Positions 58,997-63,717 of a stretch of 64,000 bases of DNA are shown piece after piece. Where the stretch lies: sequence record KJ019086.1, one strand, 5' to 3'. How positions within the stretch are numbered: the first letter of the stretch is position 1; the number at the start of each line of letters is the position of its first letter. A program made the position numbers and the translations under genes. The notes below the pieces were generated by a model that was not told the DNA's origin, did not search any database, and saw only the letters and a program-made list of their open reading frames with translations.

Positions 58997-59270
58997 AACT
59001 ATTAGAGTATTGGTCTTGACCAATGGAAAAGTCCTTATCAGTAAGATCGAAGAGATAGGAGGTGCTGATATCGGGGAGCCAGACTGCCGTCTAACCGACC
59101 CAGTATGGTATAATGATGAGGTGGAGGAAATGACTGAAGGGTTCAAACGCTTTCCTGGTAAGGGGATCACACCCGATACCAAGTTGGCCATCTCTTCTGT
59201 CAATATCTTGACTCTGGTTACCCCAGATAATAAACTCCTCAGTGAATACCTCGTGTTTATTAGTGATTAA
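58989..59270 (+). CDS. Conserved hypothetical protein with Sm-like fold (93 aa)
   Basis: IRVLVLTNGKVLISKIEE...GEPDCRLTDP pattern; usual slot before gp43. Confidence 0.7.
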   Translation: MDETIRVLVLTNGKVLISKIEEIGGADIGEPDCRLTDPVWYNDEVEEMTEGFKRFPGKGITPDTKLAISSVNILTLVTPDNKLLSEYLVFISD

Positions 59271-60745
59271 TGTCTAACAAGTTCTACACCAATGTTCAGC
59301 TTTATGGTAACAACATCCTCCTACGCGGGTATGAGAACGGAGAGAAGTTTCACACTAGGGAACAATACTCTCCCACACTATATGTGAGTTCTAAGAAACC
59401 TAGTGAGTGGAAAACACTTACTGGTGAGAATGTTCAACCAGTGAAACCCGGATCTATTAGAGATTGTAGGGATTTTATCAAGAAGTATAAAGATGTAGAG
59501 AACTTTAATGTGTTTGGTAATGAGAGGTTTGCCTTTCAATACATTGCAGACAACTATCCTGGGGAGATTGAATATGATCCCCAGTTGATTAATATCTTGA
59601 GTTTGGATATTGAGGTTGAGTCTGAACATGGTTTCCCAGATCCAGAGTCTGCTAATGAGGAAGTACTACTCATTACTATTCAGGACTATGTTACCAAACA
59701 AATCATTACTTGGGGTCAGATAAAGCATGGGGAGTTTGATAACCAACAGGATAATGTAGATTTCCGTCCATGTGAGAGTGAGTATCACCTACTGAGTGCC
59801 TTTATTCAGTGGTGGCAACAGAACCCACCTGATGTTATCACTGGGTGGAACATTGACTATTATGATATTCCATACCTCGTCAGACGCATGAAGAGAGTGT
59901 TGGGTGATAAACTAGCAAGCACTATCTCCCCTTGGAAGTTCGTAACAGACGAAGAGCACTTCTTCAAGGGTATGAATAAACTATATTATAATATCGCTGG
60001 TATCACTCAACTAGACTACCTAGTTTTATACACTAAGTTCACATATACGAACCAAGAGTCATACAGACTAGACCACATTGCTAATGTGGAGTTGGGTCAG
60101 CAGAAGTTAGACCACTCTGAGTTTGAAACTTTCAAAGACTTCTACCGAAAAGGTTGGCAGAAGTTCGTAGAATATAACATCGTTGACGTGGAACTGGTTG
60201 ACAGGATGGAAGAGAAGTTGAAACTCATTGACCTTGCCATCACTATGGCGTTTGATGCCAAGGTTAACTTCCAGGATGTATTCTCACAGGTGAGACTATG
60301 GGATACTATTATCTATAACTATCTCAGGGATAGGAACATTGTTATCCCTCAGAAGGAACAGACTAGTAAGAGTGAGAAGTTCGCTGGAGCATATGTAAAA
60401 GAACCCAAACCCGGTCTATATGAATGGGTGGTGTCCTTTGACCTTAACTCCCTGTATCCTCACCTACTAATGCAATACAACATCTCTCCAGAAACATTGA
60501 TGGAAGAGAGGTGTCCTAATATCTCCATTGAAAAGGTTCTCAATGAAGAAGTAACCTTTGAGATGTATAAAGACTATGCTGTTTGTCCTAATGGGGCAAT
60601 GTATCGCAAAGATGTCCGCGGGTTCCTACCAACCCTAATGGAAAAGATGTATGATGAACGAAAGGCGTTCAAACAAAAGATGTTGAAGTCCAAACAAATC
60701 CTCGTTGATATCGAGGCTGAAATGAAAAGAAGAGGTGTATTATGA
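59270..60745 (+). CDS. gp43A: DNA polymerase gp43, N-terminal subunit (gp43A: exonuclease domain and palm motif A)
   Basis: ExoI LDIEVE, ExoII GWNIDYYDIPYL, ExoIII YNIVDV, motif A SFDLNSLYP; ends in the first fingers helix with TGA at 60743. Confidence 0.95.
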   Translation: MSNKFYTNVQLYGNNILLRGYENGEKFHTREQYSPTLYVSSKKPSEWKTLTGENVQPVKPGSIRDCRDFIKKYKDVENFNVFGNERFAFQYIADNYPGEIEYDPQLINILSLDIEVESEHGFPDPESANEEVLLITIQDYVTKQIITWGQIKHGEFDNQQDNVDFRPCESEYHLLSAFIQWWQQNPPDVITGWNIDYYDIPYLVRRMKRVLGDKLASTISPWKFVTDEEHFFKGMNKLYYNIAGITQLDYLVLYTKFTYTNQESYRLDHIANVELGQQKLDHSEFETFKDFYRKGWQKFVEYNIVDVELVDRMEEKLKLIDLAITMAFDAKVNFQDVFSQVRLWDTIIYNYLRDRNIVIPQKEQTSKSEKFAGAYVKEPKPGLYEWVVSFDLNSLYPHLLMQYNISPETLMEERCPNISIEKVLNEEVTFEMYKDYAVCPNGAMYRKDVRGFLPTLMEKMYDERKAFKQKMLKSKQILVDIEAEMKRRGVL

Positions 60746-60900
60746 GTTTTCGTCACAAAACATATGGTGGTCTAGTTCATTATGACCACAATGATAAGAT
60801 TATAGTCATTGAACGTCGATTGAATCCAATGCAACATCACGCTATGCTTGTGAGTAAGTTGAAGGAAGAGTATCCAGAGTATCAAGTAGTTACTGGATAG
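60742..60900 (+). CDS. Small hypothetical ORF inside the split gp43 locus (52 aa, not in ORF track)
   Basis: ATGA overlap with the gp43A stop and GAGG SD; MSFRHKTYGGLVHYDHNDKIIVIERRLNPMQHHAMLVSKLKEEYPEYQVVTG. Confidence 0.65.
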   Translation: MSFRHKTYGGLVHYDHNDKIIVIERRLNPMQHHAMLVSKLKEEYPEYQVVTG

Positions 60901-61115
60901 TGAGTGGTTTAGTTGCTGAGATTATGCAAGTCGTTACTATGATTACTATGCTATTCAATATGTGCAATAGTAATGAGTTCAACAGACAAGCATGTATGAA
61001 AGACTGGGATACTTGGTTATTACCTGAGATATCCCGTGCGTGGCAAATTAAAACAGGTCAGGAAGCCCCTTACCAAAACGAGGAAGATGTGGTAGAATGG
61101 CACCAACAGCAGTGA
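60900..61115 (+). CDS. Small hypothetical ORF inside the split gp43 locus (71 aa, hydrophobic N-terminus, two Cys)
   Basis: GTG start overlapping the previous TAG; fills the remaining gap. Confidence 0.6.
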   Translation: MSGLVAEIMQVVTMITMLFNMCNSNEFNRQACMKDWDTWLLPEISRAWQIKTGQEAPYQNEEDVVEWHQQQ

Positions 61116-61122
61116 GGTTCTT

Positions 61123-62286
61123 ATTGGTTATCTTATCGGTGGAGACTCTGAGGAGAAGCAGGAGGAGATCGTTCAGTCGGATAGTGACTATTCCAAACTA
61201 TCTGATAAACAACTGATCTATCTACGTGGGCAAACTATTAAAGATATTGCTAAGTTTTATAATTTTCAACAAGTAAGGAAAATTACTCTAAACTCCGCTT
61301 ATGGTGCTTTGGGTAACCAATACTTTAGATACTATAAACTGGCGAACGCAGAGGCAGTGACCTTCTCTGGTCAGTTAAGTATCCGTTGGATTGAGAATAA
61401 GATGAATGGATTCATCAATGAGATTCTAAAAACAGAGGGTAAGGATTATGTGATCGCCTCTGATACTGACTCTATCTACATTAACTTTGGTGATGTGGTA
61501 GATAAGTTCTTGAAGAAGTTTGATGGTGATAAGGAGAAGACTGTATCAATGGTAGATAAGATCTGTAAGGATCAACTAGAACCCTTCATTGATAAGTGTT
61601 ATGCTCATTTGGGTGAGTATGTGAATGCATATGAACAGAAGATGCAGATGAAGAGAGAGAATATTGCGGACAGGGGTATCTGGACAGCGAAGAAGAGATA
61701 TATCCTGAATGTATGGGATAGTGAGGGTGTTCGTTATGAGGAACCCAAACTGAAGATGATGGGTATCGAAGCAGTGAAGTCCTCCACACCTGCTCCCTGT
61801 AGAACTATGATTAAGGATGCTCTCCGTATTATCATTGAGAAATCTGAGGATGAAGTTATTGACTACATTGATGATTGTAGAAAGAAGTTTAAACAGATGA
61901 AACCAGAGGAGATTGCGTTTCCTCGTTCCGTTAGTGATATGATCAAGTTTCGTTCTGGGACAACAATATATGCTAAGAGTACTCCTATGCATGTGAGGGG
62001 AGCGTTACTATTCAATCATCACATTAAGAAGGGTGGGTTGGAGAACAAGTATTCTCTCATCAATAGTGGTGAGAAGATCAAGTTCTGCTACCTCAAGATT
62101 CCTAATCTAATTGGTGAGAATGTTATCTCATTCATCTCCGACTTTCCTAGGGAACTTAAGTTGGAGAAGTATGTTGATTATGATACCCAATTCAATAAAG
62201 CATTCCTAGATCCACTCAAGATCATCTTGGATGCTATTGGTTGGAACTGTGAGAAGCAGATGTCCTTGGAGTCATTTTTCACCTGA
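61123..62286 (+). CDS. gp43B: DNA polymerase gp43, C-terminal subunit (gp43B: motifs B and C, thumb); probable ATT start, 387 aa
   Basis: Frame open from the TAG at 61093; contains KITLNSAYG (61279-61305) upstream of the track's TTG, plus ASDTDSIY, KKRY and MGIEAVKSSTP. GAGG at 61114-17 precedes ATT 61123. Confidence 0.9.
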   Translation: MGYLIGGDSEEKQEEIVQSDSDYSKLSDKQLIYLRGQTIKDIAKFYNFQQVRKITLNSAYGALGNQYFRYYKLANAEAVTFSGQLSIRWIENKMNGFINEILKTEGKDYVIASDTDSIYINFGDVVDKFLKKFDGDKEKTVSMVDKICKDQLEPFIDKCYAHLGEYVNAYEQKMQMKRENIADRGIWTAKKRYILNVWDSEGVRYEEPKLKMMGIEAVKSSTPAPCRTMIKDALRIIIEKSEDEVIDYIDDCRKKFKQMKPEEIAFPRSVSDMIKFRSGTTIYAKSTPMHVRGALLFNHHIKKGGLENKYSLINSGEKIKFCYLKIPNLIGENVISFISDFPRELKLEKYVDYDTQFNKAFLDPLKIILDAIGWNCEKQMSLESFFT

Positions 62287-62314
62287 TATATAAACCCCCC
62301 AGAGGAGATCACCA

Positions 62315-62473
62315 ATGGAAAAACAAAATCTAGCGATGGATCTATTCATCGAGTCTGTAATCAAACCAGACAGTGACCTTAGGGGTCAAGCATCAGAACA
62401 GGGTTGTCTAGAAGAACTATTGCAAATCCGTGATGATGTGATAAAATATCTTTATAACGAGAGGAAAAACTAG
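62315..62473 (+). CDS. Small conserved cyanophage hypothetical protein (52 aa, not in ORF track)
   Basis: GGAG SD; MEKQNLAMDLFIESVIKPDSDLRGQASEQGCLEELLQIRDDVIKYLYNERKN. Confidence 0.7.
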   Translation: MEKQNLAMDLFIESVIKPDSDLRGQASEQGCLEELLQIRDDVIKYLYNERKN

Positions 62474-62476
62474 TTT

Positions 62477-62710
62477 ATGGCGTTATCCCAATCAGTGGAG
62501 AATTCCCTCAGGGAGGCAAGTTCGTCCCTGAGGAATGCTCTAGCTTTTGCTGCCAGACAGGAGAGATCACATACCTGTCAGCATATTGCTAAAGTATTAA
62601 ACGATATTGATCTTATTCAGAGAACGGATGAGATGTTTGATACCCTTGATAGTATCAAGGATGGTAAGGGTGGTAGCAACCCATTTGGTAAATTTGGTTT
62701 TGATGAATAA
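62477..62710 (+). CDS. Conserved cyanophage hypothetical protein (77 aa)
   Basis: MALSQSV..SL.EA...LRNALAFAARQER pattern; tight packing before uvsX. Confidence 0.75.
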   Translation: MALSQSVENSLREASSSLRNALAFAARQERSHTCQHIAKVLNDIDLIQRTDEMFDTLDSIKDGKGGSNPFGKFGFDE

Positions 62711-63717
62711 TGGATTTCTTAAAGGATATTGTAAATGAAATTGGTGGCGACTTCACTCAGATTGCCTCAGAGATTGAAGAAAACGAAACATACGTGGACA
62801 CTGGTTCGTTCATCTTTAATGCTCTTGTATCTGGGTCTATCTATGGTGGTGTATCTGGTAACAAGATTACTGCAATTGCTGGGGAAAGTTCTACTGGAAA
62901 GACTTTCTTCTCACTCGCCGTGGTCAAGAACTTCTTGGATACTAATCCCGATGCATATTGCCTTTATTTTGATACTGAAGCTGCAATCAATAGAAACCTT
63001 CTTGAGTCACGAGGTATTGACCTTAAGCGGTTGGTTGTCGTCAATGTCGTTACAGTAGAAGAGTTTAGGATGAAGGCACTTAAGTGTGTCGATATCTACC
63101 AGAAGAAACCAGAAGACGAACGCAAACCTTGTATGTTTGTCCTAGATTCTCTGGGTATGTTGTCTACAGAGAAAGAGATCAATGATGCTCTGAATGACAA
63201 GAACGTTCGTGATATGACTAAATCACAACTCATCAAAGGGGCGTTCAGGATGTTGACCTTGAAACTAGGTCAGGCTAAGATACCAATGATTGTTACTAAC
63301 CATACCTATGATGTGATTGGTGCCTATGTTCCTACTAAGGAAATGGGTGGTGGTTCAGGTCTTAAGTATGCCGCCTCTACTATTATTCACCTCACTAAGA
63401 AGAAAGAGAAAGACGGTAAGGATGTTATTGGTAACATTATCAAGTGTAAGACTGCTAAGTCCAGACTCTCCAAAGAGAATACAGACGTAGGTGTTAGACT
63501 ATTCTATGATGAACGGGGTTTGGATAAGTACTATGGTCTCCTAGAACTTGGTGAGCTTGGTGGTATGTGGAAGAATGTAGCTGGTCGTTATGACTTGGGT
63601 GATGGTAAGAAGATCTACGCTAAAGAGATACTAAAGGATCCAGAGAAGTACTTCACCGAAGAAGTTATGGAGAAACTGGATGTTGTTGCTAGGGGAACAT
63701 TCTCATATGGGTCATAA
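62710..63717 (+). CDS. uvsX: RecA-like recombinase UvsX
   Basis: DTGS..FNALVSG, AGESSTGKTF, DSLGML, GGGSGLKYAAS. Confidence 0.97.
   Translation: MDFLKDIVNEIGGDFTQIASEIEENETYVDTGSFIFNALVSGSIYGGVSGNKITAIAGESSTGKTFFSLAVVKNFLDTNPDAYCLYFDTEAAINRNLLESRGIDLKRLVVVNVVTVEEFRMKALKCVDIYQKKPEDERKPCMFVLDSLGMLSTEKEINDALNDKNVRDMTKSQLIKGAFRMLTLKLGQAKIPMIVTNHTYDVIGAYVPTKEMGGGSGLKYAASTIIHLTKKKEKDGKDVIGNIIKCKTAKSRLSKENTDVGVRLFYDERGLDKYYGLLELGELGGMWKNVAGRYDLGDGKKIYAKEILKDPEKYFTEEVMEKLDVVARGTFSYGS

Follow-up and report, generated by a model that had tools for sequence, protein, structure and literature searches.

Where does translation of gp43B begin? The stretch of DNA analysed here, 64,000 nucleotides (nt) from sequence record KJ019086.1 (hereafter the window), encodes a family-B DNA polymerase in two separate cistrons, gp43A and gp43B, and the second of these has no ATG, GTG or TTG from which its conserved N-terminal part could be read. 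Based on the comparison of sequences, we propose that gp43B is very probably translated separately from a near-cognate AUU codon at 61123 (AUC in sister strains), on which the ribosome would be positioned by a Shine-Dalgarno (SD) sequence. The features on which this proposal turns are as follows.

61114-61118, plus strand: SD sequence of gp43B, GAGGT, 4-5 nt before the ATT (from the sequence and a comparison with the anti-SD)
61123-61125, plus strand: proposed initiation codon of gp43B, ATT (AUU) (from the starts of relatives, the isolates and conservation)
61123-62286, plus strand: gp43B as re-annotated, 387 amino acids and a stop codon (from the length of homologues and an alignment with RB69 gp43)
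61126-61143, plus strand: GYLIGG, the conserved N-terminal motif of split gp43B (from codon variation among 17 ATT/ATC alleles)
61279-61305, plus strand: polymerase motif B, KITLNSAYG (from the alignment with RB69 gp43, around K560; the pattern KxxxNSxYG was confirmed)

After the TAG at 61093-61095, the gp43B frame reads AAT GGC ACC AAC AGC AGT GAG GTT CTT ATT(61123) GGT TAT CTT ATC GGT GGA. Direct reading and the list of open reading frames (ORFs) both show no in-frame ATG, GTG or TTG between this TAG and the TTG at 61309. Between the TAG and the ATT at 61123, direct reading found no other near-cognate codon; the ATT is the first one. By a rough estimate, 72 codons without a canonical start are only mildly unusual by chance (a few percent), and the significance of the stretch comes from the essential motif encoded in it and from the comparative data given below. 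Because motif B lies upstream of the TTG at 61309, a start at that codon would delete catalytic residues. A preliminary description of this DNA, made from its letters alone, had noted both the missing canonical start in a stretch that encodes motif B and a GAGG at 61114-61117 that overlaps the upstream TGA and stands 5 nt before the ATT. The sequence, the ORF list and the RB69 alignment bear out the first, and direct reading the second. The description also took a CTG at 61213 for the sole other candidate start; this was too narrow, since ATC 61135, ATC 61168, ATC 61216, ATT 61237, ATT 61246 and others are in frame as well.

The GAGG overlaps the stop codon (TGA, 61113-61115) of an upstream ORF of 71 amino acids (ORF71). 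Such a signal accompanies every ATT or ATC allele for which the upstream sequence was compared, namely nine unique upstream sequences of alleles with an insertion before gp43B and that of locus L004: each has at least 5 nt of complementarity to the anti-SD, 3-5 nt before the codon, with GAGGT, GAGGTG, AAGGAGGTG, GGAGG, GGAGGT and GGTGA as examples. Alleles with an insertion and an ATG have a strict SD in only 4 of 12 cases and none in five. The base rate in the window is low as well, for a strict SD stands before 3.8% of internal ATT/ATC (Ile) codons. Before the first ATG of the long ORFs in the window, a strict SD was found in 2 of 43 cases and a loose one in 8 of 43; with only two strict matches among 43, an SD is unusual in this phage. 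In the group of alleles that carry endonuclease cassettes, GGAGG forms an invariant core, while the codons into which it falls encode differing amino acids (LEGL, PEVV, LEVV, PEGL, LEEV), and KGGV is a further peptide encoded over the fixed core among the ATT/ATC alleles. A core that stays fixed while the encoded residues change marks a signal at the level of nucleotides rather than of the peptide.

Homologues of gp43B begin at the codon that corresponds to the ATT. More than 7000 proteins matched in a search restricted to lengths of 0.55-1.75 times that of the query; most of the 120 homologues listed have 386-387 amino acids, which is the length counted from the ATT codon, and each 386/387-residue protein that we inspected starts with MGYLIGG. 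The preliminary description had proposed that a start at the ATT would read (M)GYLIGG, and this has gained support: the homologues start MGYLIGG with an ATG at exactly the same codon, and conservation of the coding type sets in there. Comparison of the homologous genes, which the description had suggested, gave ATG at this codon in most relatives. Among the 85 unique junctions found, the codon before GYLIGG is ATG in at least 72, ATT in seven and ATC in six. Two proteins required a closer look: P0014 starts with MIGG, its M lying at codon +3, and in P0019 an apparent M at codon -5 proved to be a GTG, not an ATG.

The identity of the start codon follows the structure of the junction between 43A and 43B. 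Where the two genes overlap directly as TAATG, the codon is ATG in 52 of 52 junctions. The 12 ATT/ATC junctions of determinable class all have an insertion of 70-766 nt between the two genes (a thirteenth, L004, is cut off upstream and stands outside this count), and 14 other junctions with insertions have ATG. The two kinds of sequence compare as follows.

Direct-overlap junction: TAATGGG...
Contrasting junction: ...CTTATTGGG...

In a gp43B tree the ATT/ATC alleles are scattered, and the well-supported branches force at least eight changes between ATG and non-ATG starts. The TAATG overlap, with its ATG, is used by phages that share an identical or nearly identical gp43B protein with ATT alleles. 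The sister lineage L003, with a gp43B that is 95% identical and with the same two small ORFs upstream, has an ATG start; the sequence there is GAGGAGtatTAAATG, and the TAA of the upstream ORF directly abuts the gp43B ATG. The preliminary description had named Escherichia coli infC as an example of an AUU start, and in infC the codon is conserved. Conservation of this sort was not found here, as the codon varies between ATT and ATC within the species and most relatives have ATG.

Variation within the species was studied among isolates of Synechococcus phage ACG-2014f (Kyanoviridae, Atlauavirus), to which the 1.4-kilobase (kb) region around the gp43B start is 100% identical; 45 GenBank records cover at least 80% of this region. 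Counts were based on one GenBank representative per sequence class (44 records), on the assumption that members of a class share the codon. Scans with lineage-specific patterns gave one IMG/VR locus and three metagenome contigs, so the variation was taken from the GenBank classes. About 25 of the isolates have ATT, about 19 have ATC and none has ATG.

Window type, 12 records: cttATT, identical 91-mer
US30 and US3 types, 11 records: attATT
C16 type, 2 records: cttATT, with TTG at codon +3
C90, 2 records: tttATC
C6 type, 17 records: gtgtttATC

The 91-mer shared by the 12 isolates of the window type has a T at 61125. Contigs of three independent metagenome runs also have a T at this position and no variant, which settles in favour of ATT the choice between ATT and ATG that the preliminary description had left to the reads. 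With 12 identical isolates and three metagenome runs in agreement, the T is no sequencing error. An error or a dead gene would account for the missing canonical start, and nothing else speaks for it; the same structure is present in 44 independently sequenced plaque isolates and in environmental contigs, and gp43B is under purifying selection. We therefore give this explanation practically no weight.

Does coding begin at this codon or elsewhere? Among 17 ATT/ATC alleles, codons +1 to +6 (GYLIGG) are each represented by two to five synonymous codons, with one conservative Y-to-F change, while codons -1 to -5 vary non-synonymously. In addition, the contig L192 (= L329) carries a 1-nt deletion at codon -1, and here the TGA of ORF71 lies in frame two codons before the ATC. 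The purifying selection on the GYLIGG codons implies that they are translated, and the non-synonymous variation before the ATY (ATT or ATC), together with the deletion in L192, implies that translation cannot come from far upstream.

These data bear on two other ways of reading the locus. One is that ribosomes enter from upstream, either by a +1 frameshift or read-through from ORF71, which would give a fusion, or by a -1 shift from the ATG at 61097, so that the ATT is a plain Ile codon. It would fit with this that ATT and ATC are synonymous, that the ORF71 stop lies 7 nt upstream and that the 3' end of ORF71 is invariant among the isolates. However, the relation between the frames of ORF71 and gp43B is not constant: it is +1 in the window, in frame with the TGA in L192, and in frame, with a TAA directly before the ATG, in L003. 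The sequence CAG CAG UGA G is not slippery, and the predictions gave no structured stimulator. L137 and L156 are ATT alleles that lack any upstream ORF, and L003 does not have the ATG at 61097. We consider entry from upstream very improbable.

The other is that gp43B starts downstream of the ATT, at ATC 61135, ATC 61168 or CTG 61213, and that GYLIGG is left untranslated. In Synechococcus phage MC09, gp43B indeed begins at an ATG about 20 codons further in; an AGGAGG stands just before ATC 61168; and isolate C16 has a TTG at codon +3, which was chosen by its annotators. Such a start is nevertheless hard to reconcile with the clear purifying selection on the GYLIGG codons in the ATT/ATC alleles. 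The AGGAGG is 2 nt from ATC 61168, which is too close, and relatives have V or L at this position, while CTG 61213 lacks an SD. A downstream start thus seems quite improbable to us, and initiation at the ATT remains the preferred reading.

The region just upstream of the ATT behaves differently from the region that follows. Positions 60900-61118 are almost invariant among the isolates, and variation resumes at 61119, 61120, 61125 and 61128, which places the boundary between the cassette and the variable sequence at 61118/61119. Metagenome contigs break at 61112-61119 as well. The conserved insert thus ends immediately upstream of the start codon. A separate observation concerns a hypervariable patch at 61130-61160, just after GYLIGG, in which 17 of 30 sites vary among eight sequences; its peptides (DSEEKQ, AGEGPD and SSEGPD) look like the outcome of recombination between alleles.

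Why, then, would an essential gene lack an ATG start? The gene order at this locus is gp43A, an ORF of 52 amino acids (ORF52), ORF71 and the remainder of the polymerase, whose frame is open after the TAG at 61093 and ends at 62286; uvsX lies further downstream. The features upstream of gp43B are as follows.

59270-60745, plus strand: gp43A, N-terminal half of the split family-B DNA polymerase (from the ORF list, Pfam and its GenBank annotation as gp43)
60731-60744, plus strand: ancestral gp43B initiation region, now that of ORF52, with AGAGG (60731-60735), a 6-nt spacer and ATG (60742-60744) (from the sequence)
60742-60900, plus strand: ORF52, a small inserted gene of 52 amino acids (PHROG 3538, unknown function)
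60900-61115, plus strand: ORF71, a small inserted gene of 71 amino acids (PHROG 3571 and, more weakly, 703, both of unknown function)

The ATG at 60742-60744 overlaps the gp43A stop codon (TGA, 60743-60745), and at the same place 52 relatives have an SD, a spacer and TAATG, in which the ATG starts gp43B. The start of ORF71 (GTG 60900) in turn overlaps the stop of ORF52, and ORF71 is nearly invariant among the isolates. Homologues of ORF52 occupy the same junction in separate lineages (L263, L284, L283 and L289); ORF52-like genes of Makaravirus phages sit elsewhere, beside a DNA adenine methylase gene. A gene like ORF71 lies between 43A and 43B in MC09 (L336 2468-2713), where it is annotated as 'DNA polymerase', and in L192 (3977-4246, minus strand), an Atlauavirus-like contig, ORF71 is cut to 34 amino acids by an internal deletion. 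Neither ORF52 nor ORF71 showed similarity to a nuclease, as both lack a Pfam match and match only PHROGs of unknown function.

Inserts at the same junction in relatives are of other kinds. Those of L006, L093, L141, L157 and L335 encode a protein of about 150 amino acids that matches PHROG 374 ('HNH endonuclease'), and that of L005 encodes a DUF559/Vsr-like endonuclease. In L137 and L156 the ATT follows a non-coding scar of 70-77 nt and there is no upstream ORF. The most informative comparison is between L156 (77-nt scar, ATT) and L216 (TAATG), which differ at only one of 900 nt upstream and at five of 900 nt downstream of the junction. The downstream differences all fall within the first 18 nt: one is at position 2, the start-codon change from G to T, and the other four are at synonymous sites. 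Differences are clustered in the same manner between L157 (endonuclease gene, ATT) and L323 (TAATG). Homing that co-converts a short tract, with later loss of the endonuclease gene, would be expected to leave this pattern. The evidence for such a tract comes from the relatives, and the window itself has just the sharp boundary at 61118/61119.

Two further observations concern these elements. The genome that contains the window also encodes, among DNA methylase genes, a 'putative HNH endonuclease' (L338 12892-13395 = KJ019086 138892-139395), and this protein shares 43% identity (E = 7e-19) with the C-terminal half of the endonuclease that relatives carry at their gp43 junction. A 12-nt similarity between the window (GAGGTTCTTATT) and L157 (GAGGTTGTTATT) may mean that the two initiation regions have a common ancestry; eight of the 12 positions are functionally constrained, and we draw no conclusion from it.

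An insert between two parts of a polymerase might also be removed at the level of RNA, as a group I or group II intron, or be bypassed by the ribosome, and introns are known both from gene 43 of Aeromonas phage 25 and from cyanophage psbA. For the 378-nt insert in the window this appears highly improbable. A search of 59000-63000 gave no Rfam match even at E = 10, and two conserved, closely packed ORFs fill the insert. Relatives without an insert still have two cistrons, in different frames and with a stop/start overlap. If the insert were removed, a single frame would not be restored and the stop of gp43A would be lost. Metagenome contigs contained no joints; the sole RNA run (X20, a relative) spans only 61178-61442. 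A split intein was considered separately and rejected, as the flanking sequences are much too short and an HN[CST] junction is lacking.

The history that we propose is as follows. The ancestral junction would have been the TAATG overlap of the gp43A stop and the gp43B start. DNA inserted there (ORF52 and ORF71 in the window, free-standing homing-endonuclease genes in relatives) may have taken over the old SD and ATG, and it would have brought a new initiation region, GGAGG-N5-ATY, for gp43B. In the relatives that bear endonucleases, the change from ATG to ATT appears to lie within a short co-converted tract of otherwise silent changes beside the insertion, and it may protect the allele from being cleaved again. 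Because the change travels with mobile insertions, the non-AUG start is probably a historical by-product of the insertion of mobile DNA and not a regulatory device. The more specific idea, that mobile cassettes at the 43A/43B junction of marine cyanomyoviruses, consisting of homing-endonuclease genes and their remnants, bring a ribosome-binding site and an AUU/AUC start, and that the change from ATG to ATT shields the allele from re-cleavage, is one that we put forward tentatively and rate somewhat below an even chance.

The contrary view, along lines raised in the preliminary description, is that a weak AUU start is an adaptive device, which would keep gp43B below gp43A or sense IF3 or the translational state, as in infC. 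AUU starts are IF3-sensitive in E. coli, and no ATG allele exists among the 44 isolates even though a single transversion would create one. This absence suggests that ATG is not favoured, which could reflect either the balance of expression or immunity to an endonuclease. Other findings argue against an adaptive device. The codon is not conserved: it varies between ATT and ATC within the species, and it is ATG in the sister L003, whose insert is the same; ATG is also used by phages whose gp43B is identical or nearly identical to that of ATT alleles. ATT and ATC occur only with insertions and travel with them, and the ancestral TAATG overlap already gives coupled expression. We regard a regulatory origin as unlikely, and favour the by-product of insertion.

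As for initiation itself, we propose that initiator transfer RNA (tRNA) starts gp43B at AUU 61123, with GAGGU 4-5 nt upstream to position the ribosome, and that the N-terminus is (M)GYLIGG. Decoding of AUU and AUC would be by formylmethionyl-tRNA. Ribosomes that end ORF71 at the UGA, which overlaps the SD and lies 7 nt before the AUU, may contribute by termination and reinitiation. This coupling would not be required, because two relatives have the ATT after a non-coding scar of 70-77 nt. No tRNA that could decode AUU or AUC as a start was detected in the approximately 94% of the phage genome that was scanned (about 12.8 kb was left out); the only tRNAs found were tRNA-Arg(TCT) and tRNA-Asn(GTT), both in 126-226 kb, with none in the window and none in 1-50 kb. 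The RNA around the start is not predicted to be specially structured, since the fold of 61085-61175 was no more stable than that of shuffled sequences (z = +0.85).

Several points weigh against initiation at AUU/AUC, at least in some of the alleles. ATT and ATC both encode Ile, and the same polymorphism would be expected of an internal sense codon. The 1-nt deletion allele is known from a single metagenomic contig. In most alleles with endonuclease cassettes, among them the largest such group, a GTG lies in frame five codons upstream and could be the real start there; L006/L008, L005, L190 and all of the Atlauavirus group lack this GTG. In MC09 (Makaravirus, L336 2691-3791), the ATG that starts gp43B lies within the 3' end of the ORF71-like gene; this gp43B lacks GYLIGG and is about 20 residues shorter, so the N-terminal extension is not universal and the motif is not essential everywhere. 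In E. coli reporters, AUU and AUC initiate at about 0.1-3% of the level of AUG (bioRxiv 10.1101/063800), and this seems low for an essential polymerase subunit. Finally, the predicted complex of gp43A and gp43B described below leaves the first 20 residues of gp43B unplaced, and is silent on the role of GYLIGG.

The two cistrons together make up one family-B polymerase that is broken at the tip of the fingers. gp43A (491 amino acids, C-terminus ...EAEMKRRGVL) contains the exonuclease domain, motif A and the first half of the fingers. gp43B contains the second half of the fingers with motif B, the palm with motif C (DTDS) and the thumb, and it aligns to residues 532-901 of RB69 gp43. Pfam assigns DNA_pol_B_exo1 and DNA_pol_B to gp43A and DNA_pol_B to gp43B, and the unsplit gp43 of other cyanophages aligns across the break. 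When gp43A and gp43B (387 amino acids from the ATT) were modelled as a complex, the two were predicted to assemble, with a score of 0.84 against 0.00 for the best control, a result that may reflect memory of single-chain structures of the RB69 type; the mark applied to such scores is reached by 51 of 78 solved complexes and by 2 of 108 mismatched pairs.

Among the IMG/VR loci, gp43 of cyanomyoviruses takes three forms: unsplit (about 830 amino acids, with a short fingers tip), split as here, and split elsewhere. The simplest split form has TAATG as the overlap of the gp43A stop with the gp43B start, and the Arg-Arg-Gly codons of gp43A contain an SD-like AGGGG or AGAGG. The loci split elsewhere (L019, L029, L039, L042 and L046) have the break after about residue 423 of gp43A, soon after motif A; their second part starts M(W)KDVRKMS..., with a separate insert upstream.

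Does gp43B have a promoter of its own? It may, and the candidate in the window is the following.

61070-61098, plus strand: promoter-like TTACCA and TAGAAT, 17 nt apart and with a TG before TAGAAT, inside the 3' end of ORF71 (9 of 12 positions match)

If active, this site would give a leader of about 18 nt before the ATT. Promoter-like sites are no more frequent in the region than expected by chance, and both hexamers of this one are kept in L003, a diverged relative. In the scar allele L156, a near-consensus TTGACA-17-TACTAT precedes the ATT by about 25 nt. We also observed a 39-codon ORF (61097-61216) that begins with the ATG at 61097, is in the +1 frame relative to gp43B and crosses the ATT start; endonuclease cassettes have a similar mini-ORF of nine codons in the +1 frame (ATG TGC TGG AGG GAC TTA TTG GGT ATT TAA).

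What does this mean for the annotation of such genes? In the GenBank and RefSeq records that we inspected, the start assigned to gp43B was TTG 61309, a GTG some 50 codons into the gene, a GTG two codons before the ATC, or the TTG at codon +3. The polymerase gene of the ACG-2014f group is thus inconsistently annotated and appears to be mis-annotated in these records; most GenBank records give it in truncated form, and motif B is lost with the start at TTG 61309. Gene callers limited to ATG, GTG and TTG will go on cutting genes of this kind short, with consequences for the use of gp43 as a phylogenetic marker and for pangenome counts.

If confirmed, gp43B would be a natural, population-wide case of an AUU/AUC start in an essential gene beyond infC and pcnB of E. 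coli, with a clear evolutionary cause, namely the insertion of mobile DNA at a translationally coupled junction. It would also be a concrete case in which co-conversion by a homing endonuclease reaches a translation start signal. The natural ATG, ATT and ATC alleles in otherwise near-identical phages allow the three to be compared. Should the immunity of cassettes prove to be the reason, the change from ATG to ATT would be the only 'silent' start-codon change within the endonuclease target; a selfish element would then dictate the identity of the start codon of a core replication gene, and AUU and AUC would be routine starts in viruses that abound in the ocean and infect hosts in which SD sequences otherwise see little use.

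How does this locus compare with known systems? The experimentally confirmed AUU-initiated genes are only infC (IF3) and pcnB of E. coli, and an N-terminal Met at an AUC start has been shown by Hecht et al. (bioRxiv 10.1101/063800). By analogy with infC and pcnB, gp43B would be an essential or important protein without a canonical start, with an AUU behind an SD at which initiator tRNA would insert Met. The AUU of infC differs in that it is conserved and serves the autoregulation of IF3, whereas here AUU and AUC are polymorphic, linked to insertions, and replaced by AUG in most orthologues; unlike for infC, no regulatory loop on gp43B is known.

Gene 43 is also split in Aeromonas phages 44RR, 25, 31 and 65 and in Acinetobacter phage 133, according to Petrov et al. 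(2006, 2010) as summarised in PMC2988022 and PMC3061061. As described there, the break in the polymerase lies at the fingers tip and the halves are separated either by an untranslated spacer or by the gene of a free-standing homing endonuclease; 43A and 43B of phage 25 co-purify and are active (PMC2988022). In these summaries, which do not include Petrov et al. 2010 itself, a non-AUG start of 43B is not mentioned. The present case differs in that it belongs to Kyanoviridae, that its simplest junction is TAATG and that the inserts are of the PHROG 374 type, the Vsr/DUF559 type or small ORFs. Vsr-like endonucleases of the DUF559 type have been described for 'fractured genes' of cyanophage-like metagenomic loci (PMC2677866). 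An engineered split Pfu DNA polymerase likewise shows that a family-B enzyme tolerates a break at the fingers tip, with both halves made by coupled termination and reinitiation, but the restart there is at AUG in an AUGA overlap (PMC3061061).

The closest parallel to the proposed history is intronless homing, as by SegF, SegG and MobE of T4 and F-CphI of cyanophages. The likeness lies in an insert that is sporadic in near-identical genomes, in clustered silent substitutions that are co-converted beside the site, and in scar alleles that keep the tract after loss of the endonuclease. The differences are that the insert in the window, ORF52 and ORF71, has no similarity to nucleases, that the cleavage specificity in the relatives is putative, and that the converted tract in relatives includes the start codon of an essential gene, changed from ATG to ATT. 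Thus, a gp43 split at the fingers tip with a spacer or an endonuclease gene is already known, as are the AUU starts of infC and pcnB. What is new is the way in which these are combined here: an essential gene has a proposed start that is polymorphic (AUU/AUC), always has a strong SD, occurs only with insertions at a junction where stop and start once overlapped and, in relatives, lies within a homing co-conversion tract.

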